A stretch of DNA of 30,241 nt from contig NIVC01004954.1 of assembly GCA_002269645.1 (NCBI GenBank), positions 1 through 30,241 on the forward strand, read 5' to 3'. The notes beneath the pieces are model-generated. The model was not told the origin of the DNA. It saw only the letters and a list, made by a program, of their open reading frames with translations, and did not search any database. The DNA comes from Macrostomum lignano. Its lineage: Eukaryota. The position numbers were made by a program, and so were the translations under genes. Shown one piece after another: positions 7,804 to 25,461 of this stretch. Position 1 is the first letter of the stretch. Every line of letters begins with the position of its first letter.

Positions 7804-7844
7804 GTGCGAATTCATTAGCAAAATGTGTCCCCCTGAATCCAATC

Positions 7845-9690: not shown

Positions 9691-10857
9691 AAATGCGAGC
9701 GTTATCACGGATTCACTTTTGCCTTTTTTGCGTATTTATTGCATCTACGAGTACTTATAGTTTCAATTTCCATTCTTCGTATTCACAGAAGAAAAAAGTT
9801 TAAATTGCCGCGTTGTTGTTTCTATCAGCCAAAATTCCATAGAAAAATATACAGGTAGCTGATTACTGGGCTTTACTGGATACACTTATCACAGATTTAC
9901 TAAACGGTCACAAATTTTTGTTTTATTAATTTATATACGAGTACAGTATAGGAGTTATAACTATAAGATCTAACATTTTCATGTACATGTATTTGGACTA
10001 ATTTGTACTGTTTGTTACTATAGTACGAAATATACGAGTATGTACATGTATAGTAAATGCATATTATGCTGGCTGCTTGTTCTTCGCACATACATGTACT
10101 ATACTAGTAGGCTTTTATTTGCCTTTCACGCGCGTTTGTCGAATGTCGATGTGAAATAAAATTCAAACAGGCAGTTTACGTGGATCACAACTGTTTTTGG
10201 GAGTTATTAAAAATATCTTTTTCTGAATCTGCCACCCTTCGAAGCAATCATTGAAATGAGAGTAGAATGATCGAGAAGTACACACATGTACATTTACATA
10301 CATGTACTTTACTTGGTATGTACATGTAGAGCTCAAAGTAAAGAGGTACAGTAAAGGTGCAGCTAGGTAGGATCGATGACTATAGATAAGAAGCACACAT
10401 GTTGCAATTATGTCTCGGATCTATCCATTTCAAATACTGCTACAAAAGAAGACTTTCGGTGTAGCTGTAGTAGTAGCCATACACTTGTGCATGTATGTAT
10501 TATTTGAGCCAGTGAAGTACTTTTTTATTATATTTATAAATTTTTATATGCAGGGTTAAGCGCGTCATCTAAATGTACATGTAAAATTTAATTTGGTAGT
10601 TATCTGAAGGCGCCTGCTTCCTAGTGCTTGCGTGACAATGATGATTTTACTTCTGGTGTTTTATATTTTGCAATGTACATGTACAATCCAAATTATGCTT
10701 GAACCTCACATTTATATGCTTATAATAGTGCAGTGTTAGAATTGTATACGCATTTTTAACTGCATGGTCGCTAGTAAATAAACTTATATTAATCGATATC
10801 ACAAAGCCTATACATGTACAATTAGTTTAAAGCTCAACACGACGCAAAATTAAATAA

Positions 10858-10866
10858 CTCTCTCTC
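10858..10866 (+). promoter_or_regulatory. Candidate 5'-TOP/TCT-like transcription start of the snoRNA host gene
   Basis: CTCTCTCTC tract at an abrupt AT-rich to GC/pyrimidine-rich transition, followed ~100 nt later by donor-like GTAGGT/GTATTT (10958-10967). snoRNA host genes commonly start with a 5'-TOP (established); this TSS is inferred. Confidence 0.45.
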
Positions 10867-13640
10867 GGCATCGCTCTCTAACAGTATCTGTCTCCCAGAA
10901 GCGCCCCGGCCCCCTGGCCTGGTCTCTAAGTTTGGGCGCCATCGTCTCCCTCTCTCAGTAGGTATTTCCACGCGATGCCTTGTAGTTGGCTGAAACTGCA
11001 TACAAGGAAGGTACAGTACGTGGGATACATGGCCATTTTACTGTTATTCATATCGAGCTTTCGTGGTGAATTTTTCCCTTTCGTTTGGGCGGGCGCAATT
11101 TACGGAAAATTGCATGGTATTGTACATCGGGGCTTGCAGGAAACTATATTAGGCAATAATGGGGCGCAATTTATGGGATGCATTGTTTTGACGGATGAGG
11201 GTTATCCTGCTTGAAAAAGGTAAAAGAAATATTGTACGTCGGCTCCAATGTAGCCATTGTGAGAGCTTCTCACGGGCCGGGCCGTATAAATTAGTTATGT
11301 AAATTCAAAATAAATAATGGCAAAAAATTAGTTATACAAGACTATCAAAAATATCATGCTACATATAATTTTACCCTATTAATTTTGTACCGCATGGCTT
11401 TCCTAGTCTTCTTGGCAAAATTGCTTGTAACATTTGTTCAAATTCGTAAAGTTAAATTGCATTGACAAAAAATTTACGCATTTTTAAAAGATGTTCTCCC
11501 TCAAGCCCGCTCCATAAACTGGCACTGAGAGGCAGGAGAGCGTGATCACTAGGCCTAACCTTAGTACAGCCTACTTCGTCTACTTAAACAACTGTGTATC
11601 TGTGGAAAAAAGTTTTTCTGCCTTGTTTGGCTTCGCTTCCCTTTTAATTGTAACTCCCCACCACCTAGCCCTATGATCTATGTCTAAATCTGTTTTTTTT
11701 ATTTTAGTCTAGCCTAGCCTAGCTTGCCTTAGGCCTACTTTGTCTATGCTCGGCCTGCCCATAGCTAATTTCCTAGACCTGCCTGGCCCTTAGCAAAGAA
11801 GAGCAATGCTTTGTCTTTAGTATAGGGCCTACTTCTAACAGAGGCATGGAGTTCCCATGGACACTGCTAGGGCTAGTATACCGCAAGCCGGCACTAGCCC
11901 TAATCTATATCAGATCAGATTGAAATGTTAAATGTAAGTATCCTAGGCTAGGCAGCCTAGCAAACATCCTTTGACTACGGGCCTATGACTACATGTCTTA
12001 AGAGTTATAGGGCAAATGGTTTAAGCTGCAGTAAAGTTAAAGTAGGCCTAAGTGAGCTGGCTAGGCCTAGTTCTTGTTGTAGTATTAGGTGAGGCCTAAC
12101 TCTAAACTAGGGCTAGGCCTAGTTTCAATTTTAAATGTACTAGGGGCCTACTAGGGTTAGGGTACATGACTAAGACTGCCACAGCTATTACTGGCTACTG
12201 GTATTGAGAAGAGCTACCAATCTTCTAGGCGCTAGCATTGCTATTCCTCTCCTAGACCTAGGTTCCTCTTTTGCAGCCTTGTCTTACTGGCTCTCCTACC
12301 TACTCATTAACTCATCTCTTTAGCACTATCCAATAATATATTGTGCCAAATTCCTCCCTTAGCTCCTCAAGTGTGGCCATCTTGGTATGTGGTAGTCTTG
12401 GTCTTATAAGTTATACCATGTTATAAGGGCCTATCTTAGTACTAGAAATAGCCTAGTAACCTACCTAGGCAAACTGGACTTAGTATTTAGGCCTAATATA
12501 TAATCTTGTGATTTTTTACTACTTTAGCCTAACTTTCAATTATATGTAGCTTTTTAAAATTATATTTATCCCTATTGGAATAGAATTAGCAAAGCCTGTA
12601 AACGCTGCATTGAGCATTACGAAAGATAGGCTCTACTTCAAGTTCAAAGGGTGAAAGTAGTTGTTATTTGTCTAGTGACTAGACAAATAACCTTTTGCTA
12701 TTTCGGTTTTTTGTTAAAGACAAGATGCAAAATCGCACCTTAGGCTTTACTCATTTTCAATATGCAATTTTAGGGCTCAAAGTGCAATTTCTCTTTTTCT
12801 TATTTTAAAGCAGTGCAAATAAGGTTTTAATAGAAAAATAATAGGTTGAGACCACAGTTACGTTTCAATTTCAGGGTGCAATTTTTTGATTTAAGGTGCA
12901 TACATTCTATGCACAAAAATAAACCTAGTTGCTATTTGTCTAGTTAAATTGCTAACATGAATATCTATTTGTTTAGTGATAAATATTCTAGATTTTTAAG
13001 ACCTTTTCTAGTATCCTGATTAATATTTTGTTATACTAGTGCAAGCAAAGCAGATATATGTAATGCATATATGCAATTTGGCATAATTTGGTATACAAGT
13101 AAAAGTCTTTAAAATCTTGGAATATTCACCCTTGGAGTTTCTATAAAATAGAATATCAATTTAACTAGACAAATAACAAAATGCCTATTTGTCCAGTATT
13201 AACTAGATGAATAAAGAAAGATGGCTATTATCCAGTAACCAGACAAATAGGCCCTAACCACATTGCTATTTGTCTGGTCACCAAACAAATAACAATTGCC
13301 AAGGGTGAAAACCTACAGATGTGTGCTTGAAAATAGTGTCAATTTATTATATAATATATTGCACTGTACACCTTTAGCATTATTAAATGATGTTCCAAAA
13401 GAGCATTTTTTGTCATAAATCAAAATTTGCTAATTTTTAAAAGCTCAAATTTTTGACTTTTTATTGTATATAATTAAAAAATCTCATTCCTATCTTATTA
13501 CTTGTATTAGTCTCTATTGCAAACCAAAATTAACTAAATTTTGAATAAAAAGCTTAAGGAAACTCATTTTAGGCAAATTTGTAGCTACTTAAAGTACCAA
13601 TGTAAGATAAGATGCAACAGTCATGATTGCAAAATAAAAA

Positions 13641-13958
13641 TATCAGAGTATTATGATGATAGTATTAATCCATTCTCTGACCAAGTTTATGTGTAAAGAC
13701 TGGCTTATCATCTATTATATAAGTCTTGTCTTTTGCACTAAGTTGGTGTGCGCGCCACCTTGGAAGGCTTCTCTATTTGTGCTGCTAATTTATTGTCACT
13801 TGGATATCTGGCAACCTATTCTAGCATTACAGGTTGTTAGTTTTCTGTCCTTTTTAAACAGAAACACCTGTTTTGTATGCCTGATAATCCAATATGACTG
13901 CATGCATACTTGGAGATTGCTGTCAAGATGTTAAATTTGGATCTGAATGACTCTGATA
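13641..13958 (+). ncRNA. SNORD17: Long box C/D snoRNA, SNORD17-like, copy a (28S Um at human U3818/3797, yeast 2314 equivalent)
   Basis: Box C ATGATGA 13653-13659; guide TTAATCCATTC + D' CTGA 13677-13680 complementary to 28S GAAUGGAUUAA; box D CTGA 13943-13946; 9-bp terminal stem TATCAGAGT/ACTCTGATA (coordinates include stem); ~250-nt structured insert between D' and C'. Confidence 0.8.
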
Positions 13959-14073
13959 AACTTGATAGTATCTGTAAATTTTCATATTGCAGTTGTATTA
14001 AACAATATTATCAAACTAATTATCAAAAATGCTTGTTTAATTATCAAAAAACCCAGCCTATTTGAATGTATAA

Positions 14074-14138
14074 ATGATGCTACCCAACGTGTTTTGAGTC
14101 ACAATGACTATGAATTAATAAAAAGAAACGATAACTGA
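14074..14138 (+). ncRNA. Candidate box C/D snoRNA with variant box C, 18S 5'-domain-complementary D guide
   Basis: ATGATGC 14074-14080, D' TTGA 14094-14097, C'-like ATGACTA, box D CTGA 14135-14138; AAAGAAACGATAA resembles the antisense of 18S UUAUCGUUUAUUU (yeast form, 1 mismatch). No clear terminal stem. Confidence 0.5.
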
Positions 14139-14338
14139 TCAATTACTTTTGTGTGCTTATTTACAACTTACTTAATCAATATTTGCACTATGTCCCTCTA
14201 AATATCGTTCTTTGTTTACACACATTTGCAGACTTGCTGTTTTTCCCCTTGTCACGAGCAATTAACAAAAGCAAATCTGCTTCTGAAAATGTAAGTTCTG
14301 AAACATCTGGTACTTTAACAATTTGCTTTTTTAATTTA

Positions 14339-14409
14339 ATGATGAATACTTGACAAGCATATGTCGGAATGCACTCTTGTGCTTTCTGTAGATACTATTT
14401 TCATTCTGA
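14339..14409 (+). ncRNA. SNORD27: Box C/D snoRNA, SNORD27/snR74 equivalent (18S Am27/28)
   Basis: Box C 14339-14345; guide GACAAGCATATG + D' CGGA complementary to 18S CAUAUGCUUGUC, D+5 = A of CAUAmUGC; box D 14406-14409. Confidence 0.9.
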
Positions 14410-14579
14410 ATTTTAAATTTATTCAATCAACTTTTAGGCATTGGCGCTGTCTCATGTATGGCATTGGCGAATTTTATTTCAATCAACTTTTGCAAATTTC
14501 AGGAGCTGGCATACAAAAATCGCCTACAAAGTCTTACAACATTTATTCGGTGAGTTTTTCTTCGAAGCTGTGAAACAGT

Positions 14580-14968
14580 TGTCAGAGAAACGATGATGAA
14601 TGCTTTAATCCATTCTCTGACTGAGCTTTTCAAATGTGCTTGAATAGTTATAAAAGGTCTTCCAAATTGGGGTTTTTTTGCCTCTATTTGTTAACCTTTT
14701 CTTTCAGGCACAAATTTGATTTGCTGGTGTGCGCGCCAGCTGGCTTGAACAGGCTCTCTTAGTGAAGTGCTGACTATTATTGTCACTTTAGGGTTTGCTT
14801 CAAGGGTGCTCGCTAAATACCTTTTTATAGTCGAAGACTGATTATTTATTATACCGCCTTTGACTTGTTAGTGAGCACTATAGAAGCGTGACCCGAAAAG
14901 CGAGTGCTTGCACTTCTTTTTTGCAGAGCCGTTTGGATGTAAATTATGGTTCTGAGCGTTCTCTGACA
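14580..14968 (+). ncRNA. SNORD17: Long box C/D snoRNA, SNORD17-like, copy b
   Basis: Box C 14593-14599; same guide TTAATCCATTC + D' CTGA 14617-14620; box D 14952-14955; 10-bp stem TGTCAGAGAA/TTCTCTGACA (included); ~310-nt insert sharing motifs with copy a. Confidence 0.8.
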
Positions 14969-15021
14969 GCGATTATTAGTATATGGTTAGTTTTTATAGC
15001 TTAATTAACGCACCAGTTTGT

Positions 15022-15102
15022 CATCCACAAATGATGATCAATTTTACACCGTCATGCTGTTTGATTCGCCTGATAATAAAACTATAGCAGCTGATGTGGA
15101 TG
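15022..15102 (+). ncRNA. Box C/D snoRNA, four-copy family with guide TACACCGTCATGCTGT, copy 1
   Basis: Box C 15031-15037, D' TTGA, box D 15091-15094, 8-bp stem CATCCACA/TGTGGATG (included). Confidence 0.85.
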
Positions 15103-15224
15103 CTATCAATGTCCTTATGACACTATTTAAAATCTAGAATATCGATTTTAAGTTTTATATCAGATTCAGAATCCTTAGAGATAAGGTTAGGTTGTGGCTT
15201 GGTTTAAAAAACTGGCTGTCAAAA

Positions 15225-15292
15225 ATGATGATAATTATTCACAACTGTTTGTTTTGAGTTAACATGACAATTTCACATGCATCACCATCTGA
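15225..15292 (+). ncRNA. SNORD33: Box C/D snoRNA, SNORD33/snR55 equivalent (18S Um1326), copy 1
   Basis: Box C 15225-15231; D guide CATGCATCACCA pairs 18S UGGUGGUGCAUG (one G-U); box D 15289-15292; D+5 = UGGUmGG. Confidence 0.88.
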
Positions 15293-15538
15293 TGTAGTTT
15301 ATTGAGTACATTTTAATGAACATGTAAGCTATGCTTGCCATTTTATAAAAAGTACAACCTGTCGCCCAAAAACTCTACTTTCATAGGTACTGGTAGTAGA
15401 TTATTAACAAGTTCTCAAGTCTGCCGGTCCAGTGTTTCATTTTCTAAATTTAAGGTAATTATTGGTTTTGACTATATTTTGCTTTTTGTGATCATACATA
15501 AACATAGCCTGAAATTTTCATTTAAGCATGTACGTCGC

Positions 15539-15635
15539 TTGTATTCACCAAAAATGATGACCAATTTTTATACACCGTCATGCTGTTTGACACACTTTTG
15601 ATAATTAAAAACAATGGCAGCTGAGGTGAATACAA
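15539..15635 (+). ncRNA. Box C/D snoRNA, four-copy family, copy 2
   Basis: Box C 15554-15560, guide TACACCGTCATGCTGT + TTGA, box D 15621-15624, 11-bp stem TTGTATTCACC/GGTGAATACAA (included). Confidence 0.85.
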
Positions 15636-15823
15636 TAGGCATTTCCCTTAACACCTTTGCTGCTCATCATCATTCAGAATCATCGTTTATCTTCATTTTG
15701 CTAACGAAAGTCTTTGTTCTTAAATCGATCTTCTAATTAAAAGCAGTCTGAAAAATCCGAAGCAAATAGTTCTCTTTAGTACGAGTAGAAGTCAGTAGCA
15801 AGCAAGCAACGTGTCCTCAGAAA

Positions 15824-15911
15824 TGTAATATGATGTTTGTTATCCCTGGCTTAGTTCAATAAGCTCTATGTAGTAAATACTTTATGCCAACTTCAATGGC
15901 TGCTGATTACA
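15824..15911 (+). ncRNA. SNORD1: Box C/D snoRNA, SNORD1/snR38 equivalent (28S Gm4392, yeast Gm2815)
   Basis: Variant box C ATGATGT 15830-15836; guide GTTATCCCTG + D' CTTA complementary to 28S CAGGGAUAAC, D+5 = CAGGmG; box D 15903-15906; stem TGTAAT/ATTACA. Confidence 0.82.
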
Positions 15912-16038
15912 GTTCTGTATACATACGATGATACGACACTTGCTGCTTTTTTGGTATTCAATTTTTAATTAGGACAATATATACTTTTTTTACTAATACT
16001 TAGGACTAGGTCTATTAACTGCAACTTGGGCGTTTTCA

Positions 16039-16119
16039 ATGATGATTGGAATTACCGTCGGAAGTTGGTGTACCAATTTGTGTACGCTGGCGATTCTTTG
16101 AAGAAAATTTGCTGTCTGA
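16039..16119 (+). ncRNA. SNORD65: Box C/D snoRNA, SNORD65/snR77 equivalent (18S Um627/578), with a U24-like D element
   Basis: Box C 16039-16045; guide TGGAATTACCG + D' CGGA complementary to 18S CGGUAAUUCCA; box D 16116-16119 preceded by GAAAATTTGCTG; stem GGGC/GCCC. Confidence 0.88.
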
Positions 16120-16188
16120 GCCCTTGATTTGCCATTTTTATGCCTATATACTACAGTGTAGATAGTCTTGCGTATAAGCCTACTTTTT

Positions 16189-16262
16189 ATGATGATAAAT
16201 ACGTTTGCTTACCTTATCTGTGATCTCTTAAAGGGACGTGATAAGACACTACAGCGCTCTGA
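16189..16262 (+). ncRNA. SNORD48: Box C/D snoRNA, SNORD48 equivalent (28S Cm1881/1868), copy 1
   Basis: Box C 16189-16195; D guide CTACAGCGCT pairs 28S GGCGCUGUGG-type sequence (after GAACU) with G-U pairs, D+5 = GGCGCm; box D 16259-16262. Confidence 0.78.
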
Positions 16263-16455
16263 TGTATATATATTGATCAGAAGTGTTTTTATATTGTAGA
16301 ATATTTTATAAATTTCTCTAACAATGCCACTTTCTCTTAATTACTACAGGTCTAAGCTGTCCTGGGGCCTTTTAAAATCAATATAAAAGTAAGTGAATTC
16401 AAAACCAATAACCAACTCAATTTTTGTAGTAATAAGCTCTACTATTATGTTTTTA

Positions 16456-16521
16456 ATGATGACTATTTCCTTACCTACTATGATTTATTACTAATGTGAA
16501 TGCAATATTTCCCGAATCTGA
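16456..16521 (+). ncRNA. Box C/D snoRNA predicted to guide 28S GUAGmGUAAGGG, copy 1
   Basis: Box C 16456-16462; guide TTCCTTACCTAC + D' ATGA complementary to 28S GUAGGUAAGGGA; box D 16518-16521 preceded by TTTCCCGAA. Confidence 0.85.
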
Positions 16522-16710
16522 AATGCTAGTCTAAATTACATATATGTAAGCTTAAATTTTTAGAAGTAAATCAAAAAATAAATTTTGTCACTAATTATTT
16601 TCAGATTTAGCGATCCAGTGTGACTCTGATCTAAATTTAAGGTAAGCTTCAATTCACTTTTTTTCATATTACTTGGGTTTATGTATAATCTTTGTTACAA
16701 GCAATAGATT

Positions 16711-16799
16711 GGCTTCATTCATGATGACTCAGATTTTACACCGTCATGTTGTATGATCTCGCATGAGTTTAGTTCTATTTGTCTCTGAGTTTTAAAGCC
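16711..16799 (+). ncRNA. Box C/D snoRNA, four-copy family, copy 3 (divergent 3' half)
   Basis: Box C 16721-16727, guide TACACCGTCATGTTGT + ATGA, box D 16785-16788, stem GGCTT/AAGCC (included). Confidence 0.8.
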
Positions 16800-17775
16800 T
16801 TTATTAATACCTTACAAACTCTTTAAAACCCCCGGATTTTAAACCCACCGTATTCCCATCCCCGGAACTCTTTATTGCATACATCCTTAAATTTAAAGTC
16901 ATACTGAAACAAAAACTTTAAAGTTAGAATAGAGGTTTGATGAATGTAGTAAATTCGTGTTAAATAAAGATTTAAGACAAGCATTGATTGATCTGACTAA
17001 GCGATGAGATGAGAGATTAATGAGCGGCACAAACACCAGAAAAAGCAGACAAACTTCACATGCTTACAGTTATTGTCCTGATTGAGTTACAGAGTTGAGA
17101 CTTGATATCGAGACAGAAAATAAGTCTAAAGAATGGTAGGGTGGCAAGTCAATAGAATTTCAGGTAGGGTGGCAGGTCAATAGAATTTCAGGTAGGTTAG
17201 CAGGTCAATAGAAAAAAGACATTAATCAAATTCTAATACTAATCAAACCCGAGCAGCACGAGGCAAGACATTATCGTGATGGTGAACCTGACTTCTCTAA
17301 GCCACCCGCCATCCGGACGCCAACCCAACCAGTTTGAGACCGCCAGATGTTGGAGGAGGGAATGAGCGACTGATCGTTCGGCAACAAATTTCATGCTAGC
17401 GTTAAGCAAAGTTACGGCAGCCAAACGATTGGGGTGGTTGCTACGCTGACAAAAAGCAGACTAACTTTAAAAGTGCACAGCTCCGTACAGGATTGACTTT
17501 ATGACTCGAAATTTTTACACGCTTGTGTCGAAATAGTTAGAGATTGTTTGTGTCAAATTTGAGTAGGTTTGATAAAGGTGGAGCGCCGCTATAGAGGATT
17601 AAGTAAAAAAATCCCGCTTTCTTAGCAGCAACTTTTTGCACTTTGAGGTGGGAATACTGGGAAGACGCTCTCCGTAGTGAGGTTAGGGTGGGTGCAAAAC
17701 GGTGTCATTTGGTTGAGCGGTTTGAGAGTCCATAGCGAACAAAATTGGCCACAGACACACAGTTTACAGATTTTA
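16800..17775. mobile_element. Probable interspersed-repeat insertion in a host-gene intron
   Basis: ~1 kb of higher-GC, snoRNA-free sequence in an otherwise compact region, with an internal 28-bp triplication (17135-17213). No TIR or TSD found; ends approximate. Confidence 0.35.
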
Positions 17776-17782
17776 GGTATAA

Positions 17783-17854
17783 ATGATGATAGAATATTGA
17801 CACCTCTTGTCTGATATTTACTAAGTAAATGCGGAGTTTATTAGCTCTATCTGA
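17783..17854 (+). ncRNA. SNORD44: Dual-guide box C/D snoRNA: D = SNORD44 equivalent (18S Am166), D' = 28S G equivalent to yeast Gm2791; copy 1
   Basis: Box C 17783-17789; TGACACCTCTTG + D' CTGA pairs 28S CA(A/G)GAGGUGUCA; TATTAGCTCTA + box D 17851-17854 pairs 18S UAGAGCUAAUA. Confidence 0.88.
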
Positions 17855-18037
17855 TCAAGTATCAAGCTCTTTTGTCCTAATAGAAATCGTTAAGAATCGA
17901 TGCAAGTTTTCATATTCACTTATTTCATTTTAGAGGACGCTAAAATCCAGCTGGAAAATTGTAAGCCTTCTTAACAGTGCTTCAGGTCAGTTAGCAATGC
18001 TTAAGTATTTTTCCCCACCCTTATTTTACTTTTTACA

Positions 18038-18111
18038 ATGATGAATTAATTATAGCATAGTTCATATGAACTGTACCCAGTGTACGGCATGTACAGAATT
18101 TTCAAGCCTGA
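18038..18111 (+). ncRNA. SNORD77: Box C/D snoRNA, SNORD77/80-D' (snR60) equivalent (28S Am1534, yeast Am817)
   Basis: Box C 18038-18044; guide GCATAGTTCA + D' ATGA complementary to 28S UGAACUAUGC, D+5 = GUGAAmC; box D 18108-18111. Confidence 0.85.
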
Positions 18112-18291
18112 TATTTTATCTACCTATTAGCTACCTATTAGTTGTACCTATTTGATAAAACGACATCTTTTTTACAAGTCAGATATTTTTTTAATTTCTT
18201 TCCAGTTTGCCGCGTCAATGAAGTTTCACTGCTACATCCATCCAAGGTAATTTTTATTGCTCAGCTCTATTATATAACATATCTATAAATG

Positions 18292-18367
18292 CAGTGGCGG
18301 ATCCAGGATTTTTTCCGTGAGGTCGGCCGACCCGATCCCCTTGACCCCCCTTCTGGATCCGACAGTG
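18292..18367. mobile_element. 76-bp mini-MITE with 15-bp TIRs and 8-bp TSD (hAT-like)
   Basis: CAGTGGCGGATCCAG ... CTGGATCCGACAGTG (13/15 inverted match); flanks TATAAATG / TATAAATA. Confidence 0.7.
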
Positions 18368-18376
18368 TATAAATAC

Positions 18377-18443
18377 GTGATGAAAATAACACATCTGTGT
18401 TTGATTTGGTCATGATATATAATTTCCATGCATCACCATCTGA
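18377..18443 (+). ncRNA. SNORD33: Box C/D snoRNA, SNORD33 equivalent, copy 2
   Basis: Box C GTGATGA 18377-18383; guide CCATGCATCACCA; box D 18440-18443. Confidence 0.87.
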
Positions 18444-18619
18444 TTTGCTTTTTTATTGGTATTAATAAAAAAAATATGTGCTTTTAATAAACTCGTCTCT
18501 ACTGTAGCCATATTTTCACTTGCCCATTTTAGTGCATTTTTCCTGGTTGGATATCAAGTCAAGTGTTAACTTGCAAAGTCAGGTAGGCTTACATTGTTGA
18601 ACTTGTGTTTTTGTTAATT

Positions 18620-18783
18620 GCGACTTTCTCGTTTCAATCACCGACACGCAAAAAATATCTTATTGGTGACTGATTCATTTAGTCGCTAGATTACACTGAC
18701 AGCCGCATAAAATCCAGAAGCAGAGTAGAGATCTTTTGTTTATCTCCCAAAGTGTCTGCTTTTGATGAGCGCGGATTACATTA
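18620..18783 (+). ncRNA. Candidate box H/ACA snoRNA
   Basis: Hairpin 1: GCGACT/AGTCGC lower stem, TCAATCACCGA/TTGGTGACTGA upper stem; H box AGATTA 18688-18693 (14 nt from the upper stem); hairpin 2: CCGC/GCGG and AGAAGCAGA/TCTGCTTTT; ACA at 18778-18780 (14 nt from the upper stem). Confidence 0.7.
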
Positions 18784-18853
18784 CTATTAATAGTAGTATT
18801 TAACAAAACCGACCTCTTTATAATGGCAGAAATGGCACGCAATGTTATAAATA

Positions 18854-18924
18854 ATGATGATAACCCATAATTCTTCACTTTGAACTGAACAAATATCAAC
18901 TGTGATGTTAGCACTGGGTTCTGA
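18854..18924 (+). ncRNA. SNORD37: Dual-guide box C/D snoRNA: D' = SNORD37 equivalent (28S Am3718), D = SNORD88/snR76 equivalent (28S Cm3701); copy 1
   Basis: Box C 18854-18860; TTCTTCACTTTGA + D' CTGA pairs UCAAAGUGAAGAA; C' GTGATGT; AGCACTGGG + box D 18921-18924 pairs CCCAGUGCU. Confidence 0.9.
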
Positions 18925-18968
18925 ACTATTATAATCATGGCTGCCACCTATATTTGTTTAGATTCTTG

Positions 18969-19059
18969 TTAATTATGATGAAATTTTAATTTCCACAGTT
19001 CAATCGTCCGATAATGCTTGATTAGATGCGGACTATTATTAGCTCTACCTGATAATTAA
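18969..19059 (+). ncRNA. SNORD44: Box C/D snoRNA, SNORD44 equivalent, copy 2 (different D' guide)
   Basis: Box C 18975-18981; CAGTTCAATCGT + D' CCGA; TATTAGCTCTA + box D 19049-19052; stem TTAATTA/TAATTAA (included). Confidence 0.87.
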
Positions 19060-19225
19060 ACAGTTGTTTTGTTATTAAAGTGAGTTTTTTGCATTTTTAA
19101 TTGCAATTTTCATGTTATTTTTTTATTTCAGATGTCTTCTACCGACCAATGTCATCTCGGGGCTTTGAGGGGTAAGGCGTCTTTTTTATCTACTATTAGT
19201 AGCATAATTTTCACTTTCTATTTAC

Positions 19226-19320
19226 ATGATGATCTCTATTGATTAGTCTTTCTGAGCTTTGTAATTAGTTAATAAACATTTTAACCAATTACAAAACTGC
19301 TGACTAACGCCCCTATCTGA
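19226..19320 (+). ncRNA. SNORD80: Box C/D snoRNA, D guide = SNORD80-D/snR60 equivalent (28S Gm1625, yeast Gm908); copy 1
   Basis: Box C 19226-19232; GATTAGTCTTT + D' CTGA 19252-19255 pairs 28S AAAGACUAAUC; CGCCCCTAT + box D 19317-19320 pairs AUAGGGGCG. Confidence 0.87.
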
Positions 19321-19528
19321 TAATTAGTGTGTTAGTTGAAACTTTCATATGGTATTGAAGTATTTCATAAGACACCCGTCTAAGAAATTCATCCATTGTT
19401 TGTTTTAACACCGTTTTAGAATCCGATTCGTTTTTATGGCAAAATGGCACTGGTTCAACAAGTCTACAGAGCCAACAGGTGAGTTAATAGCCAGAATTAT
19501 TTTAATATTTTTGCCTATGCTGACTGTT

Positions 19529-19603
19529 ATGATGATATGAATCACCTTTGGCTTTTGATAGGTTTCTTTAAATGAAAATTATCTACCATGCATCACCATC
19601 TGA
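19529..19603 (+). ncRNA. SNORD33: Box C/D snoRNA, SNORD33 equivalent, copy 3
   Basis: Box C 19529-19535; guide CCATGCATCACCA; box D 19600-19603. Confidence 0.87.
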
Positions 19604-19771
19604 GAAATTTTTCTAACATTTACCAAAATCAGCCAGATGTGTGTGTCCAGAAATTCTACAGAAATTCTCCATCTCTACTCTGCATTCCAGTTGGCCCGTT
19701 CAAATTTTCAAACAAGAGTTAAAACAGGTAAAACTGACATTGTTTTAGTTTCTAACATCAATATACAATTC

Positions 19772-19862
19772 AGCATCCATTAATGATGATTTCATTTTAC
19801 ACCGTCATGCTGTTTGATTTCAATAATGAAATTTAACCATATTGGCAGCTGAGATGGATGCT
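19772..19862 (+). ncRNA. Box C/D snoRNA, four-copy family, copy 4
   Basis: Box C 19783-19789, guide TACACCGTCATGCTGT + TTGA, box D 19849-19852, 9-bp stem AGCATCCAT/ATGGATGCT (included). Confidence 0.85.
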
Positions 19863-20064
19863 CTACGGTGTACATTTGGTCTTATAGCATATTTAAGAAA
19901 ATTATACTCGTAGATAGCTAATTTGACTGCGTGTGTTCTAAGACGAATTTCTCTAAGTTTCTTCTTATCGTGTAACTTATGAATGGATAGTTTTGAGCAA
20001 ACAAGCTGGCAATGGTGTAATAATCTTATCTATCAGATAGAATACACGCTTGGCTATTTTTATC

Positions 20065-20136
20065 ATGACGATCCAACAATTTAGTATCAACCTTATCAGT
20101 GTATTGGATTCAATATAAAGCACTACAGCGCTCTGT
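20065..20136 (+). pseudogene. Decayed SNORD48-like copy 2
   Basis: Retains ACCTTATC and CACTACAGCGCT of the 16189 copy, but box C is ATGACGA and box D is CTGT. Confidence 0.65.
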
Positions 20137-20496
20137 CGTCTAGATAAAGCTGGTATTTTAGCTCCTATTCGAGGCCTAAGTGTTTTGCTTAACGTATCTT
20201 CCTTATTTTATGTTGGTGCCTCCCAGGGTTTTTTTTTGTGCGCAGAGTGTGCGTATGCACCCTAAATTTTAAAATCGCACCCTGAAATTAAAAAAGTAGG
20301 TGCGGTTTAGGTGCGGTCTTATAACCATTTTTCTTTAAAGGCTTAACCATGCTTAAGCTATTTTTTATGCACTGCCTTAAAATATGAAACAAAATAACTC
20401 TTTAATTCCTATTAAGTCATATAGGCAATATAGCCTATAGCTATAGCCTTATGTAAGATATTAAAATATACATTCCCAGTTGTCTGAACTGTGAGC

Positions 20497-22983
20497 AATG
20501 TGAGGGTTTCACGAGAGATATTCAGACAAAGGCTCCCTAAAACACGCCCCACACCGGGCCCCGAACTGCTACACATTATAACATTTTTTGTCAATGCAGT
20601 ATTTGATTGCAAGGAAAAGTTAAAATAGTAATGGAATAAATATCTTTATTTATTTTTTTAAATATTATTATTTTTATATTCTCGTTTTCATTATTAAATT
20701 ATAATATTATTATTTTATTAATATTATTATTAATATCACTTATTGTTCACCGAATTTTATATTTCAAAGTAAAAAAACTAAATTTAATAAAAACTTGAAG
20801 CTTAACAGAAAATGCATTCTGAAGTGTCTTTAGTTATAGTCCAATTTGTTTTAATGTGTAGCGCTGCAGGGCGGTGCGGGGCGTGTTTTAGGGAGACCCA
20901 TTCAGACAGACATTCAAAATGATTGTCTGTAACTTCAAACAAAATTGACCCGCTTCAACCATCTTTTTGGCAAATACTTACGCAAGTGTTGGGCGTCGAA
21001 TAAGCTTTAATTTATTAACTGAAGTAAAAATCCTTCTGACATACATTGATTTAAAAATTGCTTAGCAACACTAGCTCTGATTAGAAATCGCTTTACTGTT
21101 GACTAAAATTGTTTTGATCGTAGCAGCCTAAAAGCAGATACTGGATTTAAAAATGCTTCGATTTACTCTATACGCATGTCTCAGCTTTAAAATGACACCT
21201 CAGGCGTCGCAAAAGACAGCTTTGATGCTGAGATATTCGACACTAAACATGCATTGCTTTGCGCAATCTCACATTCAGAAATTTCACTGATTTTTTGTCG
21301 ATATTTGTGCAGTTGCCATGTCCTTGTTTTTCATCAGAATCTTGTCAAATTCTAGTCATGTCTATACGCATGTCTCAGCTTTAAAATGACACCTCAGGCA
21401 TTGCAAAAGACAGCTTTGATGCTGAGATATTCGACACTAAACATTGCTTTGCTCAAACTCACATTCGGAAACTTCACTGATTTTTATTCAATATTTGTTC
21501 AGATGCTTGTCTACTTCTCCATTTATTAACCATCGCATGGAGCCTTGCTAACGTACAAGTGTATGTAGTTACAGTAAATGGGGTTTTTGTGACTCACTTA
21601 AACTTGTTTACGCATTCTGCAGCTATTCGCCGCCTTTCATTGGAGTGATTCATGGAGTCCAGTTGATAAATTTCCACAAATTGGACTGCTTCTACGTCAG
21701 ATCTCAACATTTGGAACCGTCCTTGAACTATTTCAGAGTTAAGTGAGCTAATGGCATCAAATGGAAGGCTAGTGCTCGTACTTGTAAGCGAAGCAGGTTC
21801 ACAATTGAAATGGTTATATTCATGGCCATGGGATCTAAACTGATCTGTTTTACTTTCACGATCGCTTTGGTCTCAGAAGGAGCAGCAGTTGATGGACTGA
21901 GGTGAGAAGAAGATGTGTCACGACTTGAGCTGTTTATAGAAAATATCTTTATCCAATTAAATATTTTCATGCGGCTCCTTAGGTTGTTCCGAATTCCGAG
22001 TCTAGAAGTCAAGACAGAAAAAAAGTTAAGAACTGCTACTGTAGTCCGTAGGGATTGGAAAGCTTAGCAGTACATTAGAAATCGCCAGTTCAATCTAAAA
22101 AGTTTGAAGTACATATAGCTATTGGGTTGCAACAACAGTAGAAAAAATTCTTCCTTTTTATTTTATTCCCACCGCTTACCTCATTCCGATTTGGATAGCA
22201 GAATTGCCACGCAAAAAAAGTAAAAACATAACAATAAACTATTTGCTTCATATTAATTGCCACTGACTGTTAATAAACGCGACGTCAATTTCTCTCAATA
22301 ACAGTTGGAACATGTTTCTCGTACACTCGTATATTTATTTGAACCGCAAAGCGGTGAAAAAGTCATGATTGGTTGCCATATGTACAAATGTACACTCACA
22401 GACTCACTGACTCAGGTACAATCTATGCAATATAAAGGCAGGAATCATTAAAAATCAAATACTTAAGACAGTTTAAGAGAAGTCCAGGTTTAAACTGGAC
22501 ATGACTAAAATTTGACAAGTTTCTGATGAAAAACAAGGACACGGCAACTGCACAAATATCGACAAAAAATCAGTGAAATTTCTGAATGTGAGATTGCGCA
22601 AAGCAATGCATGTTTAGTGTCAAATATCTCAGCATCAAAGCTGTCTTTTGCGATGCCTGAGGTGTCATTTTAAAGCTGAGACATGCGTATAGAGTAAATC
22701 GAAGCATTTTTAAATCCAGTATCTGCTTTTAGGCTGCTACAATCAAAACAATTTTAGTCAACAGTAAAGCAATTTCTAATCAGAGCTAGTGTTGCTAAGC
22801 AATTTTTAAATCAATGTATGTCAGAAGGATTTTTACTTCAGTTAATAAATTAAAGCTTATTCGACGCCCAACACTTGCGTAAGTATTTGCCAAAAAGATG
22901 GTTGAAGCGGGTCAATTTTGTTTAAAGTTACAGACGATCGTTTCGAATGTCTGTCTGAATATCTCTCGTGAAACCCTCACATT
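20497..22983. mobile_element. Foldback-like element with ~490-bp terminal inverted repeats
   Basis: AATGTGAGGGTTTCACGAGAGATATTCAGACA (20497-20528) plus 20909-21362 is the near-perfect reverse complement of 22498-22983; partial tandem duplication of the left arm at ~21363-21490. Confidence 0.85.
20529..20899. mobile_element. 371-bp MITE with 9-bp TSD (Mutator-like) inserted in the left arm of the foldback element
   Basis: TSD ATTCAGACA at 20520-20528 and 20900-20908; inverted CTCCCTAAAACACGCCC / GGGCGTGTTTTAGGGAG near the ends; very AT-rich core. Confidence 0.8.
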
Positions 22984-23228
22984 CTAAACAAGACTCAAGA
23001 GAAATTGCACTCTGAGCCTTAAAATCGCACCTTGAAATTTGGCACAAGGTGCGATTTCGCACCTTATCTCTGGCGAAAAAAAAAACCCAGGACTGCCTCC
23101 CTAAAATCCTCAGATTATGTGACGCACCTAATGCTGCATGATTCAGTTTACTTGTAAGTGACTGCCAATATGCTCGTAATATAATTAAATAAATATATAA
23201 TTTGTATACTCGTACCAGAAACTAACTA

Positions 23229-23305
23229 GTGATGAATAATTCCTTACCTACTATGATAATGTTTTAGAAAACTCCAGTTGTGATTTAAAAATATCCCTAA
23301 TCTGA
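23229..23305 (+). ncRNA. Box C/D snoRNA predicted to guide 28S GUAGmGUAAGGG, copy 2
   Basis: Box C GTGATGA 23229-23235; TTCCTTACCTAC + D' ATGA; box D 23302-23305 preceded by ATATCCCTAA. Confidence 0.85.
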
Positions 23306-23485
23306 CTTTATTACTAATTATAGTATTTTACGCTACTATCTTAGGCATTTTTTTCAATTACTTTAAGTAGTCACTTTCCTCTCAAAATTTTAGTACATAT
23401 TCTTGCTTGGCTGGCTAGTGCTGCAACTAATTTAGCAAGGTAAGATCAGTAGGACCTGTAGAGGCTTATGTTATATTAAGAATCC

Positions 23486-23554
23486 GTGATGATAACTCAG
23501 AATTCTTCACTTTGACCTGATTATTGACAATGTGATGATAGCACTGGGTTCTGA
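23486..23554 (+). ncRNA. SNORD37: Dual-guide box C/D snoRNA SNORD37+SNORD88 equivalent, copy 2
   Basis: Box C 23486-23492; TTCTTCACTTTGA + D' 23517-23520; perfect C' GTGATGA; AGCACTGGG + box D 23551-23554. Confidence 0.9.
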
Positions 23555-23615
23555 ATTGTTTTTAATATAACTAGCCTCTAGTTTTTTAAAATCAGATTGC
23601 TTTTTTATTAGCTAA

Positions 23616-23691
23616 ATGATGACAAAAACAATTTGACACCTCTTGTCCGATGTAAATAACATAAATGCGGACTGTTATTAGATATACCTGA
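23616..23691 (+). ncRNA. Box C/D snoRNA, copy 3 of the 17783 family (keeps 28S Gm2791-type D' guide, D guide degenerate)
   Basis: Box C 23616-23622; TGACACCTCTTG + D' CCGA; TATTAGATATA (vs TATTAGCTCTA) + box D 23688-23691. Confidence 0.85.
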
Positions 23692-23885
23692 GAAATCATT
23701 TCTAGGACTCTAGTAAAATGCGAAAATAATAAGCTACTATTGTTTAAGTCAATCAATTAAATCTTTTCAGCAGCGAATGCGGCTGATTGCTTCAAAATAT
23801 GTCGAATTCAATTTTTTTCGCAGGTAGGCGTCTCTTATCAGTTGTTTGATTCTGAACTCTTAAGCAAGCTACTCCACCACCTGTA

Positions 23886-23949
23886 ATGATGATTTATATG
23901 GATTAGTCTTTCTTAGTTCTCAAATGTGCAGACAAACGCCCCTATCTGA
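23886..23949 (+). ncRNA. SNORD80: Box C/D snoRNA, Gm1625/908 guide, copy 2
   Basis: Box C 23886-23892; GATTAGTCTTT + D' CTTA; CGCCCCTAT + box D 23946-23949. Confidence 0.87.
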
Positions 23950-24139
23950 CTACTGTCAATTATAGCTATGCAAAATAGCTCATTTATGTAGTGTGCCAGA
24001 CCTTTTATTGTCTGATTGTTAATTTACCATTTTATTTTTGCAGGAGTTCAATCAAATCCAGTTTGTGCTCTAAGATCTGCAGCTTTAAGGTGAGACAATG
24101 CTATTTCTAACCCAATAAATCAGGAGTTCACGTTGTAAA

Positions 24140-24218
24140 ATGATGAGACATTTTTGGATCAACCATATGAGTCAATGTAGCTATTGGCTAAATGAATTGC
24201 GTCTAAAATTCTCTCTGA
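24140..24218 (+). ncRNA. Box C/D snoRNA with D' guide to the 18S 5' end (predicted Um8); U6 element degenerate
   Basis: Box C 24140-24146; GGATCAACCA + D' ATGA complementary to 18S UGGUUGAUCC; CTAAAATTCTCT + box D 24215-24218. Confidence 0.85.
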
Positions 24219-24261
24219 TTTATTGCCCCTTTCCAATATCCTACTAACCAGCTGTACATCA

Positions 24262-24340
24262 ATGATGAGACATTTCCTGGATCAACCATATGAGCCTGAC
24301 TATTGTTAGGTCTATGAATGGTGCCTAATCTTCTCTCTGA
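24262..24340 (+). ncRNA. SNORD7: Dual-guide box C/D snoRNA: D' = 18S U8, D = U6 snRNA Am47 (SNORD7/mgU6-47 equivalent)
   Basis: Box C 24262-24268; GGATCAACCA + D' ATGA; CTAATCTTCTCT (12-nt perfect complement of U6 AGAGAAGAUUAG, nt 43-54) + box D 24337-24340; D+5 = A47. Confidence 0.88.
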
Positions 24341-24898
24341 ATGATAGCAAATATCTACTAGGTCTGTTACTACAGGATTAAGCTGGGTAACTTTTAAGCG
24401 TCACTTGCTTCTCTTTACATTTCAGAGCCTCGAAATTGCTTCTGGAGATTTCCTTTTTTATATTATCCGGCTCTACAAAACAATTGTGATAGACATTTTA
24501 TTTGATTTGATTTGATTAAAGTCAAATTTTGACAGCAAATTGTAACTAATTTCTGTTATAATATATTTATTTACTGAGCCTATAAGCTTGCTAACAAACG
24601 AACGGTCTTTCTCTGTTTTCGCTGTTTCATGTATTTAAAGAGTTTATTAAATACAAATACGTAATATTATCTTGAAATCATGATATTCGTGATTTGATTA
24701 CACCCTGAGAACATTCTGTCACTTTCACTAAAGGCATATTAGGATAGAGGATAGAAAAATGCAAGGCCCGTAACAGAAACTAGATATGTATAGAACGTGA
24801 AGGAATGTGCAGTTCTGAAAGCTAGTGTGTGAGGGAGCTGTAGTCGGGTAGTAGGTAGTAAGGGTGGAAAATGTAGGTTAGTAGTCATACTTGCGCAA

Positions 24899-25040
24899 CC
24901 TTGGGAATCACTCGGCCGTTTCTATTGGCAACACGCATGTAAGTCGCTATTGGCTGAGAGCAGTCGCGTGACTACTATTCCGTCCAATAGCGGCTTACAT
25001 GTGTGTGTTGCCAATAGAAACGGCCGGGTGAATCCCTAGG
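24899..25040. mobile_element. 142-bp palindromic MITE-like element
   Basis: Two ~55-bp arms are near-perfect reverse complements (CACTCGGCCGTTTCTATTGGCAACAC / GTGTTGCCAATAGAAACGGCCGGGTG); flanks TTGCGCAA / TTGCGCCC resemble a degenerate 8-bp TSD. Confidence 0.65.
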
Positions 25041-25074
25041 TTGCGCCCAAGCATGGTAGTAGTGTTAAAGACGC

Positions 25075-25360
25075 AGGTTTAGGGTAGCAGTGTAAAGGGA
25101 GGCAGGTGTAGGGTAGCAGCGTGAAGGAAGGCAGGTGTAGGTAGCAGTGTGAAGGGAGGCAGGTGTAGGTAGCAGCGTGAAGGGAGGCAGGTGTAGGTAG
25201 CAGTGTGAAGGGAGGCAGGTGTAGGTAGCAGTGTGAAGGGAAGCAGGTGTAGGTAGCAGCGTGAAGGGAGGCAGGTGTTGGTAGCAGCGTGAAGGGAAGC
25301 AGGTGTAGGTAGCAGCGTGAAGGGAGGTGTAGGTAGTAGTGTGGAGGGAGGCAGGTGTAA
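25075..25360. repeat. 28-bp purine-rich tandem repeat (GTAGGTAGCAGTGTGAAGGGAGGCAGGT)n
   Basis: About 9-10 units directly visible. Confidence 0.92.
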
Positions 25361-25461
25361 GTAACAGCTTTAAGAGCTACGAACTTACTACTTTCGTTTC
25401 TACCTATATTCAGTCTTGCTTGATAATAATTTAAACAAATCACTACAACTTTCCCACAGCC

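Follow-up and report, generated by a model that had tools for sequence, protein, structure and literature searches.

A probable single host transcript for at least 24 box C/D snoRNA genes in the flatworm Macrostomum lignano

The plus strand of one locus in the flatworm Macrostomum lignano probably carries at least 24 box C/D small nucleolar RNA (snoRNA) genes, or 26-28 when degenerate copies are included, arranged in about 18 introns of what would be one spliced RNA polymerase II transcription unit. The locus lies in contig NIVC01004954.1 of GCA_002269645.1, the Mlig_3_7 assembly of this neopolyploid species; the whole stretch analysed, called the window below, spans 30,241 nucleotides (nt), and the reading given here derives from its sequence. 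Between positions 13653 and 24340 of the plus strand there are 24 canonical units in which a C box (RTGATGA) is followed by a D box (CTGA). Beyond these are two units with a single mismatch in the C box (AUGAUGC at 14074 and AUGAUGU at 15830), one decayed copy (ATGACGA...CTGT, 20065) and one weak candidate (13918-13985). An earlier reading of the same DNA, referred to below as the original prediction, had arrived at a tally of C/D units with outer limits of 13641-24340, and a unit-by-unit recount returned the same tally and the same limits.

The clustering of the boxes far exceeds what base composition would produce. The RTGATGA motif occurs 28 times in the whole window, compared to 7.2 +/- 2.5 times in 100 dinucleotide shuffles, and 25 of the occurrences are on the plus strand within 13653-24262, with only 2 on the minus strand. 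When a C box is required to be followed by CTGA at a distance of 55-105 nt, 22 pairs are found on the plus strand and none on the minus strand; 500 dinucleotide shuffles of the region gave a mean of 0.40 such pairs and a maximum of 4.

The units are taken to be real snoRNAs because the guide, together with its adjoining box, is the same as a family consensus in alignments. Over 14-20 nt, guide plus box is identical to the Rfam consensus of SNORD27, snR55/SNORD33, SNORD37, Z102/R77, Z30/U6-47, sn2417, sn2841 and TtnuCD24/28, families that come from vertebrates, yeast, plants, nematodes and a ciliate. Sub-threshold matches collected by E-value are nearly all to C/D families on the plus strand. 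These consensus alignments uphold the assignments to SNORD27, SNORD33, SNORD37 and a U6 guide that were made originally. One further assignment was tried and rejected: family A (paralogue families are lettered in Table 1) is not SNORD34, as its guide differs despite a 27-bit match.

Predicted targets were derived from a reference with complete 18S, 5.8S and 28S genes (L042), a eukaryotic ribosomal DNA (rDNA) found among metagenome contigs fetched by a 5.8S pattern, which is not M. lignano's own ribosomal RNA (rRNA). Two unanchored scorings were uninformative: for complementarity of whole units to rRNA the null was too high to discriminate, and in pooled 10-mer matching to 118 rDNA loci the sense control gave as many matches as the antisense. 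Duplexes were therefore anchored at the D or D' boxes. Scored in this way, exact complementarity of 10-14 nt to conserved rRNA segments ends 0-1 nt from D or D', in L042 and in up to 36 other rDNA loci. Antisense elements of at least 10 nt near these boxes amount to about 14 guide specificities for 18S, 28S and U6 small nuclear RNA (snRNA), judged on foreign rDNA and U6; they support the original claim of at least 14. The p-values of single guides against foreign rRNA are modest (0.004-0.1), and the weight of the target evidence lies in the coincidence with known family guides. Human or yeast numbering is used only for 18S A27/A28 and U6 A47.

In 18S rRNA the guides are predicted to act on A27/28 and the extreme 5' end, on the UAGAGCUAAUA and GGUGGUGCAUGG sites, and in the 530-loop and AUCAGUUAUCG regions. 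The guide of the 14334 unit, UGACAAGCAUAUGUC, matches the consensus of both SNORD27 and Tetrahymena TtnuCD28 and is a 12-nt complement to 18S 25-36, with guide position 5 opposite A28 of a yeast-like 18S, equivalent to human A27. The D guide of the 17778 unit, UAUUAGCUCUAUCUGA, equals the Z102/R77 consensus and is an 11-nt complement to UAGAGCUAAUA, found in 23 rDNA loci. The 15220 unit carries CAUGCAUCACCAUCUGA, the snR55 consensus (that of SNORD33 being CAUGCACUACCAUCUGA), and pairs with GUGGUGGUGCAUGG; in its relative at 18372, guide plus D box is the same as the snR55 consensus over 19 nt. The D' guide of the 16034 unit, UUGGAAUUACCGU, pairs with GCGGUAAUUCCAG in the 530-loop region. Just 5' of its D box the 14069 unit has AAACGAUAA, which pairs with UUAUCGUUU, and the same unit includes a 14-nt exact complement to AUCAGUUAUCGUUU that is found in 16 eukaryotic rDNA loci. 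The extreme 5' end of 18S, UGGUUGAUCC, pairs with the D' guide of the 24257 unit, GGAUCAACCA, which equals the TtnuCD24 consensus.

The predicted 28S targets are the SNORD37 site, a C 17 nt upstream of it, GAACUAUGC, AAAGACUAAUC, AUAGGGGCG, GUAGGUAAGG, GAAUGGAUUAA and ACAGCAGGACGGUG. The SNORD37 site (GUCAAAGUGAAGAA) is addressed by two double-guide units. That at 23481 shares 20 nt with the SNORD37 consensus and is exact to 28S over 14 nt, and the D' guide of that at 18849 is exact over 13 nt (UCAAAGUGAAGAA). The D guide of the 23481 unit (AGCACUGGGU, common to both units) pairs at the C 17 nt upstream (GCCCAGUGCU), and in the 18849 unit the top match of its own D guide fell in 18S. In humans these two 28S sites are presumably served by separate snoRNAs, SNORD37 and possibly SNORD88. 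Further anchored pairings join the D' guide of the 18033 unit, GCAUAGUUCAU, to GUGAACUAUGC, which we take to resemble the U18 site; the D' guide of the 19221 unit, GAUUAGUCUUU, to AAAGACUAAUC, found in 36 loci; and its D guide, CGCCCCUAU, to the adjoining AUAGGGGCG, a pairing that was scored on the paralogue at 23881. The guide of the 16451 unit, CCUUACCUACUAUGA, is common to its paralogue at 23224, where it equals the Caenorhabditis elegans sn2841 consensus, and pairs with GUAGGUAAGG. Guide plus box of the short 13648 unit equals the C. elegans sn2417 consensus, with an 11-nt exact complement to GAAUGGAUUAA adjoining the CUGA. The family A D' guide, CACCGUCAUGCUGU (15022 unit), is kept in four paralogues and pairs with ACAGCAGGACGGUG with one mismatch, and the guides of the 15825 unit show imperfect complementarity to CAGGGAUAAC and GGCCAUGGAAGU.

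The predicted target in U6 snRNA is A47. In the 24257 unit, UAAUCUUCUCUCUGA equals the snoZ30 consensus, and a snoU6-47 match was obtained as well; the pairing segment AGAGAAGAUUAG is a 12-nt complement to what we take to be U6 43-54, with guide position 5 presumably opposite A47, and is corroborated by both the Z30 and the U6-47 consensus. The neighbouring 24135 unit has two mismatches in its U6 guide, its C box is mutated in one other assembled copy of the locus (L124, introduced below), and it is probably degenerating.

The units appear to lie in the introns of a spliced host. As the original prediction had it, about 18 small exons can be placed between them: the model has 18 internal mini-exons of 29-90 nt (37-90 nt for the 17 after the first), each set between a polypyrimidine-AG acceptor and a GT donor, plus a last exon. 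The donor motif GTRAG, the M. lignano cis-donor motif found at 65% of junctions (PMC8629364), is present in 9 of 17 model donors. Splice signals are biased to the strand of the snoRNA units, with 16 GTRAG motifs on the plus strand against 6 on the minus strand and 21 acceptor-like sites against 5. In 15 of 17 introns the D box of the final snoRNA ends 79-99 nt ahead of the 3' splice site, and the first C box mostly lies 39-67 nt past the 5' splice site. Assembly of intronic C/D small nucleolar ribonucleoproteins (snoRNPs) is position-dependent, with an optimum about 50 nt upstream of the branch point (PMC8162545). The spacing fits this optimum and is the strongest indirect evidence for a putative intronic layout. 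These splice signals and distances support the earlier proposal that the snoRNA genes lie all on one strand in the introns of a spliced unit; that all of them share one transcript is a feature of the model. Ten of the 18 model introns hold one unit and eight hold 2-4.

By analogy with UHG, SNHG, GAS5 and Uhg, the host pre-RNA would be transcribed and spliced. Snu13/15.5K, Nop56, Nop58 and fibrillarin would join each C/D unit co-transcriptionally, favoured by its fixed place about 80-95 nt upstream of the 3' splice site, and exonucleases would then trim the debranched intron down to the protected snoRNP. The spliced exon chain, with no open reading frame (ORF) on this reading, would probably be a disposable by-product, and the snoRNPs would guide 2'-O-methylation at conserved positions, on the nucleotide opposite the fifth guide residue upstream of D or D'.

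The array itself appears to have arisen by repeated duplication of snoRNA units, after which double-guide copies would have lost or changed one guide. Nine paralogue families can be distinguished; members of a family share an unchanging C box, D box and one or both guides and have diverged elsewhere, and in a self-BLAST of the region similarity was found only inside snoRNA units, never in the flanks. This bears out the growth by internal duplication that was originally suggested. Family A keeps the D' guide and varies the D guide; family B keeps one D guide alongside three different D' guides; and family C has one copy with both guides, one with D only and one with D' only. The D guide of the family H unit at 16184, CACUACAGCGCU, is also kept in the decayed copy at 20060.

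The assembly contains four copies of the locus: the window, NIVC01000218.1 (L001), NIVC01000206.1 (L123) and NIVC01004669.1 (L124). L001 is 97-99.9% identical to the window, and L123 and L124 are more divergent (93-98%). Nearly all boxes and assigned guides are unchanged among the four; the few differences affect a D' guide of family B and, in L124, a single copy each of families A and F as well as the 24140 C box. The snoRNA units differ by 1.45%, the model exons by 1.0% and the rest of the intron sequence by 2.2% (Fisher p = 0.05 for units versus introns and 0.01 for exons versus introns). An apparent 3.1-kb deletion in L001 was ruled out as a structural variant, as positions 2225-2429 of that scaffold are a gap of 205 Ns in place of window positions 14738-17885, which hold nine snoRNA units; the larger scaffold thus under-represents the array. 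A hAT-like transposon between 20225 and 23093 is present in the window and in L001, and L123 and L124 carry an intact empty site. The insertion is therefore polymorphic between the assembled copies, and the snoRNA-bearing part would ancestrally have been about 8 kb long.

Several observations weigh against this interpretation. No unit matched Rfam at gathering thresholds, the best scores and their thresholds in bits being 38.2/45 for SNORD37, 36.8/50 for snR55, 36.1/44 for SNORD33, 28.3/52 for SNORD27, 28.2/40 for Z102/R77 and 18.2/50 for Z30. The Rfam check called for in the original prediction thus had a divided outcome, with no gathering-level match and with guide-plus-box strings that equal the family consensus in sub-threshold alignments. 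The two canonical units at 13653 and 14593, in which C to D is only 28 nt, are shorter than any canonical snoRNA, and no 3' half is recognisable in either; they have a bona fide guide in common with nematode sn2417 and may be minimal RNAs or relics. Terminal stems of 4-8 bp occur in about seven units, including the external stem of the 15542 unit, and the others have at most 3 bp; such stems are not enriched over background, and most units are without a clear one. Some pairings contain a mismatch, and no target was found in the foreign rRNA for the family A D guides, the family B D' guides or family H. In vertebrates the rule is one snoRNA per intron. That expectation fails here: the eight model introns with 2-4 snoRNAs would depart from the rule, or else exons have been missed. 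Finally, both ends of the modelled host are provisional. The 5' end originally placed at 10858 is a weak candidate: as a terminal oligopyrimidine (TOP) start, the 9-nt run there (CTCTCTCTC) does not stand out among the 45 pyrimidine runs of at least 9 nt in the window, and the donor that follows it, GTATTT, is non-consensus.

The 3' end bears directly on the description of the host as ORF-less. No ORF longer than 94 amino acids (aa) exists on either strand of 10800-24800, and in the joined model exons every frame is interrupted by stops and the longest ATG ORF reaches 60 aa, which agrees with that description; an intronless MCTS1/Tma20 ORF with an acceptor at its ATG, just downstream, makes it uncertain. 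About 30% of M. lignano genes are trans-spliced to a spliced leader (SL), and many are grouped in operons, for which the criterion is a repeat-adjusted spacing of less than 1 kb (PMC8629364). Given the same-strand ORF with its acceptor and the existence of SL operons, the host could be the upstream part of an MCTS1 unit, either as a long 5' untranslated region spliced to the acceptor at 25460 or within an SL trans-spliced operon, where it would be the outron or the first cistron. The ORF begins 0.8-0.9 kb after the last mini-exon, and its acceptor (cacag, followed by CC AUG) is 2 nt before the ATG; after the last model acceptor the only poly(A) signals are ATTAAA at 24515 and 24646, with no AATAAA before the ORF. 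About half of the spacer consists of a palindromic miniature inverted-repeat transposable element (MITE) and a minisatellite, which brings the repeat-adjusted distance below 1 kb, the operon criterion of the species (PMC8629364). The last mini-exon, however, has no GTRAG donor (the best is GTAACT, 6/9), the acceptor CCACAG fits the YTNCAG trans-splice motif poorly, and the SL ends in an ATG that is out of frame with that of MCTS1. Furthermore, no C/D cluster was found near MCTS1 in two trematodes (Fasciola and Opisthorchis), so that the linkage is not conserved. Translation-related genes are typical snoRNA hosts. An MCTS1 unit of one or the other kind is an unlikely reading. Improbable, too, is the specific proposal of a snoRNA super-host transcript that runs on into MCTS1/Tma20 as outron or first cistron of an SL trans-spliced operon. 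If such read-through were true, the animal would co-transcribe roughly a quarter of its methylation guides with a translation re-initiation factor, and the products would be unusual, with C/D RNAs of half size (about 40 nt) and several snoRNAs per intron.

The single host could also be two or three tandem host genes, for instance at 13.5-16.8, 17.8-20.1 and 23.2-24.5 kb, split by repeat-rich segments. The chain is indeed broken by two long segments (16800-17770 and the transposon at 20225-23093), where the model needs introns of 1.3 and 3.7 kb compared to about 200-330 nt for introns with a single snoRNA, and the parts are joined by the exon model only. Against this division, the 2.9-kb element is recent, being absent from two other copies, so that the ancestral intron would have been about 0.8 kb; there is no TOP-like start or poly(A) signal pattern at the internal boundaries; and the strand and spacing rules are uniform throughout, which leaves tandem hosts improbable. 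Closely spaced units with no exon between them (18849/18970, 23481/23611, 24135/24257 and 15542 through 16184) would suit a polycistronic precursor cut by an endonuclease, as in plant, yeast and trypanosome clusters, with no splicing and with "exons" that arise by chance. The regular 79-99 nt to strong acceptors and 39-67 nt from donors, the strand bias of the splice signals, and the lower divergence of model exons than of introns all speak against such a precursor, which is very unlikely. A reading of the units as motif matches due to chance, or as dead snoRNA pseudogenes, draws on the lack of gathering-level Rfam matches and on clearly decayed copies (20060, 24135 and 13918). It is effectively refuted by the 22 C-to-D pairs where 0.4 are expected, by guides that are family consensus sequences, and by the selective retention of boxes and guides among old paralogues. 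The reading that we prefer remains a single spliced host with intronic C/D snoRNAs, whose features are collected in Table 1.

Table 1. Features of the M. lignano snoRNA locus and its surroundings, in positions of the window; in rows for guide plus box, units are given by the C-box position
Position	Strand	Feature	Boxes or borders	Details
10858-10961	+	first exon as originally proposed	donor GUAUUU, not GTRAG	pyrimidine run CUCUCUCUC; local GC peak
13573-13601	+	first well-supported mini-exon	acceptor uuuuag; donor GUAAGA	donor 51 nt before first C box
13743-13832, 14232-14290, 14503-14549, 14927-14985, 15138-15185	+	model mini-exons 2-6	AG/GT	
15387-15454, 16350-16388, 16605-16641, 17934-17985, 18206-18246, 18533-18582	+	model mini-exons 7-12	AG/GT	
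19132-19171, 19420-19478, 19691-19727, 23394-23439, 23771-23823, 24044-24089	+	model mini-exons 13-18	AG/GT	
24426-24670	+	last model exon	weak donor GUAACU at 24542	ATTAAA at 24515, 24646
13648-13685	+	short C/D unit	C 13653-13659; D 13677-13680	guide UUAAUCCAUUCU; paralogue of 14588 unit
13918-13985	+	weak degenerate C/D-like candidate	no canonical C box	sub-threshold snoU83D and SNORD69 matches only, E 0.4-0.9
14069-14143	+	C/D unit, one-mismatch C box	AUGAUGC 14074-14080; D 14135-14138	
14334-14414	+	SNORD27-type C/D snoRNA	C 14339; D' CGGA 14365; D 14406-14409	
14588-14625	+	short C/D unit	C 14593; D 14617-14620	guide as in 13648 unit; sn2417 match 24.5 bits, E 0.08
15022-15102	+	C/D snoRNA, family A	C 15031; D' UUGA 15061; D 15091-15094	8-bp terminal stem
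15220-15297	+	SNORD33/snR55-type C/D snoRNA, family B	C 15225; D 15289-15292	Rfam SNORD33 36.1 bits, E 1e-3
15542-15632	+	C/D snoRNA, family A	C 15554; D 15621-15624	8-bp external stem UAUUCACC/GGUGAAUA
15825-15911	+	C/D unit, one-mismatch C box	AUGAUGU 15830; D 15903-15906	weak snoR38 match
16034-16124	+	C/D snoRNA	C 16039; D' CGGA 16059; D 16116-16119	
16184-16267	+	C/D snoRNA, family H	C 16189; D 16259-16262	canonical boxes
16451-16526	+	C/D snoRNA, family F	C 16456; D' AUGA 16480; D 16518-16521	
16716-16793	+	C/D snoRNA, family A	C 16721; D 16785-16788	
17778-17859	+	Z102/R77-type C/D snoRNA, family C	C 17783; D' 17811; D 17851-17854	
18033-18116	+	C/D snoRNA	C 18038; D' AUGA 18066; D 18108-18111	
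18372-18448	+	snR55/SNORD33-type C/D snoRNA, family B	C GUGAUGA 18377; D 18440-18443	Rfam snR55 36.8 bits, E 2e-3
18849-18929	+	SNORD37-type double-guide C/D snoRNA, family D	C 18854; D' 18885; D 18921-18924	Rfam SNORD37 29.3 bits
18970-19057	+	C/D snoRNA, family C	C 18975; D 19049-19052	retains D guide only
19221-19325	+	C/D snoRNA, family E	C 19226; D' 19252; D 19317-19320	
19524-19608	+	SNORD33-type C/D snoRNA, family B	C 19529; D 19600-19603	Rfam SNORD33 26.8 bits; family B D guide
19772-19861	+	C/D snoRNA, family A	C 19783; D 19849-19852	8-bp terminal stem
20060-20141	+	decayed family H copy	AUGACGA ... CUGU	
23224-23310	+	C/D snoRNA, family F	C GUGAUGA 23229; D 23302-23305	sn2841 consensus guide
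23481-23559	+	SNORD37-type double-guide C/D snoRNA, family D	C 23486; D' 23517; D 23551-23554	Rfam SNORD37 38.2 bits, E 1.7e-5
23611-23696	+	C/D snoRNA, family C	C 23616; D' CCGA 23647; D 23688-23691	D' guide retained, D guide mutated
23881-23954	+	C/D snoRNA, family E	C 23886; D' CUUA 23912; D 23946-23949	
24135-24223	+	C/D unit, family G	C 24140; D 24215-24218	sub-threshold TtnuCD24 and Z30a matches
24257-24345	+	Z30/U6-47-type C/D snoRNA	C 24262; D 24337-24340	D guide to predicted U6 A47
units 15225, 18377, 19529	+	guide + box CAUGCAUCACCAUCUGA		snR55/SNORD33
units 18854, 23486	+	guide + box AAUUCUUCACUUUGA(A/C)CUGA		SNORD37
unit 14339	+	guide + box UGACAAGCAUAUGUC		SNORD27, Tetrahymena TtnuCD28
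units 17783, 18975	+	guide + box UAUUAGCUCUAUCUGA		plant Z102/R77
unit 24262	+	guide + box UAAUCUUCUCUCUGA		Z30, U6-47
units 24140, 24262	+	guide + box GGAUCAACCA		TtnuCD24
units 16456, 23229	+	guide + box CUUACCUACUAUGA		C. elegans sn2841
units 13653, 14593	+	guide + box UAAUCCAUUCUCUGA		C. elegans sn2417
20225-23093	.	hAT-like terminal-inverted-repeat transposon, about 2.9 kb		8-bp target-site duplication TGCCTCCC; in host intron; no part in gene function
25462-26010	+	intronless MCTS1/Tma20 ORF		182 aa; Pre-PUA and PUA domains; homologues found

The window holds a number of other features. A segment of about 90 nt is duplicated 3' of each short C/D unit (13743-13832 and 14708-14795), the first copy having been modelled as an exon; it has a conserved GGUGUGCGCGCCA hairpin and also UUAUUGUCAC, which is complementary to 18S AGUGACAAUAA. 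The H/ACA candidate of the original prediction was not recovered. An Rfam search for H/ACA families gave no match with E<1 (SNORA72, matched at E 7.6, overlaps both an exon and a C/D unit), and folding of the hairpin-rich stretch 14800-14925 gave no hairpin-H-hairpin-ACA arrangement: AUAGAA follows a long hairpin, there is no ACA, and the 3' hairpin is only about 30 nt. A transfer RNA scan found none. Four copies of MCTS1/Tma20 are present in the assembly, two of 182 aa and two of 180 aa, and the trematode MCTS1 orthologues are 10-20 kb genes with introns.

The hAT-like element has terminal inverted repeats (CAGGGTTTTTTTTT) and internal inverted arms of 470 nt (20893-21362 and 22498-22967). 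Recurrent motifs (CTAGACAAATAAC; AAATCGCACC...TGAAATT) occur within the long first intron (12600-13300) and again at either end of this element (20230-20320 and 22985-23070), which suggests related MITE-like repeats. The segment at 16800-17770, in a host intron, is GC-richer and free of snoRNAs, and includes a short tandem repeat (17135-17213); it occurs in all copies, with a variable repeat number in L124. At 24893-25046 there is a long, near-perfect, MITE-like palindrome with sub-threshold matches to plant microRNA families in Rfam (MIR851, 50.7 bits versus a gathering threshold of 90, and MIR399); it probably represents a foldback repeat and not a microRNA gene. Minisatellite arrays at 25055-25374 (a 28-nt unit, GGTAGCAG(C/T)GTGAAGGGAGGCAGGTGTA), 5872-6318, 7727-8371 and 9032-9760 give long spurious repeat ORFs on both strands. 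Further downstream, a plus-strand ORF of 295 aa (29105-29992) has a hydrophobic N-terminus and a C-terminal Laminin_G_3/concanavalin A-like domain (E 1.9e-12).

If the preferred reading is confirmed, a single locus of about 8-11 kb would supply this regenerating flatworm, a model in which transgenesis is possible, with at least 14 conserved guide specificities for 18S, 28S and U6, and would offer a compact genetic handle to remove many rRNA methylations together. It would rank among the largest known hosts of canonical (non-orphan) snoRNAs and would clearly illustrate how snoRNA families grow by duplication, with double guides partitioned among the copies. Literature searches on snoRNA hosts in Macrostomum or flatworms returned nothing specific; the locus appears to be undescribed, and it would bring new snoRNA annotation to a phylum for which none was found in the literature searched. 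Our understanding of how snoRNAs are encoded or processed is unchanged by the locus.

The exceptional size originally claimed for the host was overstated when set against known systems. In mammals, the imprinted hosts SNHG14 (SNORD116/115) and MEG8 (SNORD113/114) are each a single long non-coding host whose introns contain dozens of C/D snoRNAs made by tandem duplication. The flatworm locus resembles them in having many C/D snoRNAs on one putative host, produced by duplication, and differs in that theirs are near-identical orphans without rRNA targets, whereas here at least 14 canonical rRNA and snRNA guide specificities are predicted. With the vertebrate 5'TOP hosts UHG/SNHG1 and GAS5 it would have in common intronic C/D snoRNAs at a fixed distance from the 3' splice site and short, poorly conserved, ORF-less exons; those hosts carry about 8-10 snoRNAs, one per intron, and begin at a TOP start, for which the run at 10858 is a weak candidate here. 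The units are like the Rfam families named above in a guide and adjoining D or D' box that is identical or nearly identical over 14-20 nt. They are unlike them in whole-model scores of 18-38 bits, under every gathering threshold (35-90 bits), in their unrelated non-guide parts, and in that some join guides that are separate elsewhere, for example the SNORD37 site and the site 17 nt upstream. Drosophila Uhg1 hosts 16 snoRNAs and has no other product (PMC4430873). Like Uhg1-Uhg8, the M. lignano locus would be a non-coding host with many rRNA-guide C/D snoRNAs, paralogous copies among them, in successive short introns on the same strand, a layout known here from sequence alone. Unlike the Drosophila genes, it has about 24-28 units, several introns with 2-4 units, a U6 guide, a hAT insertion in an intron and a protein-coding ORF directly downstream, all in a flatworm that trans-splices. 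The locus is thus an unusually large example of the well-known UHG/SNHG/Uhg class of arrangement and not a new kind of gene.

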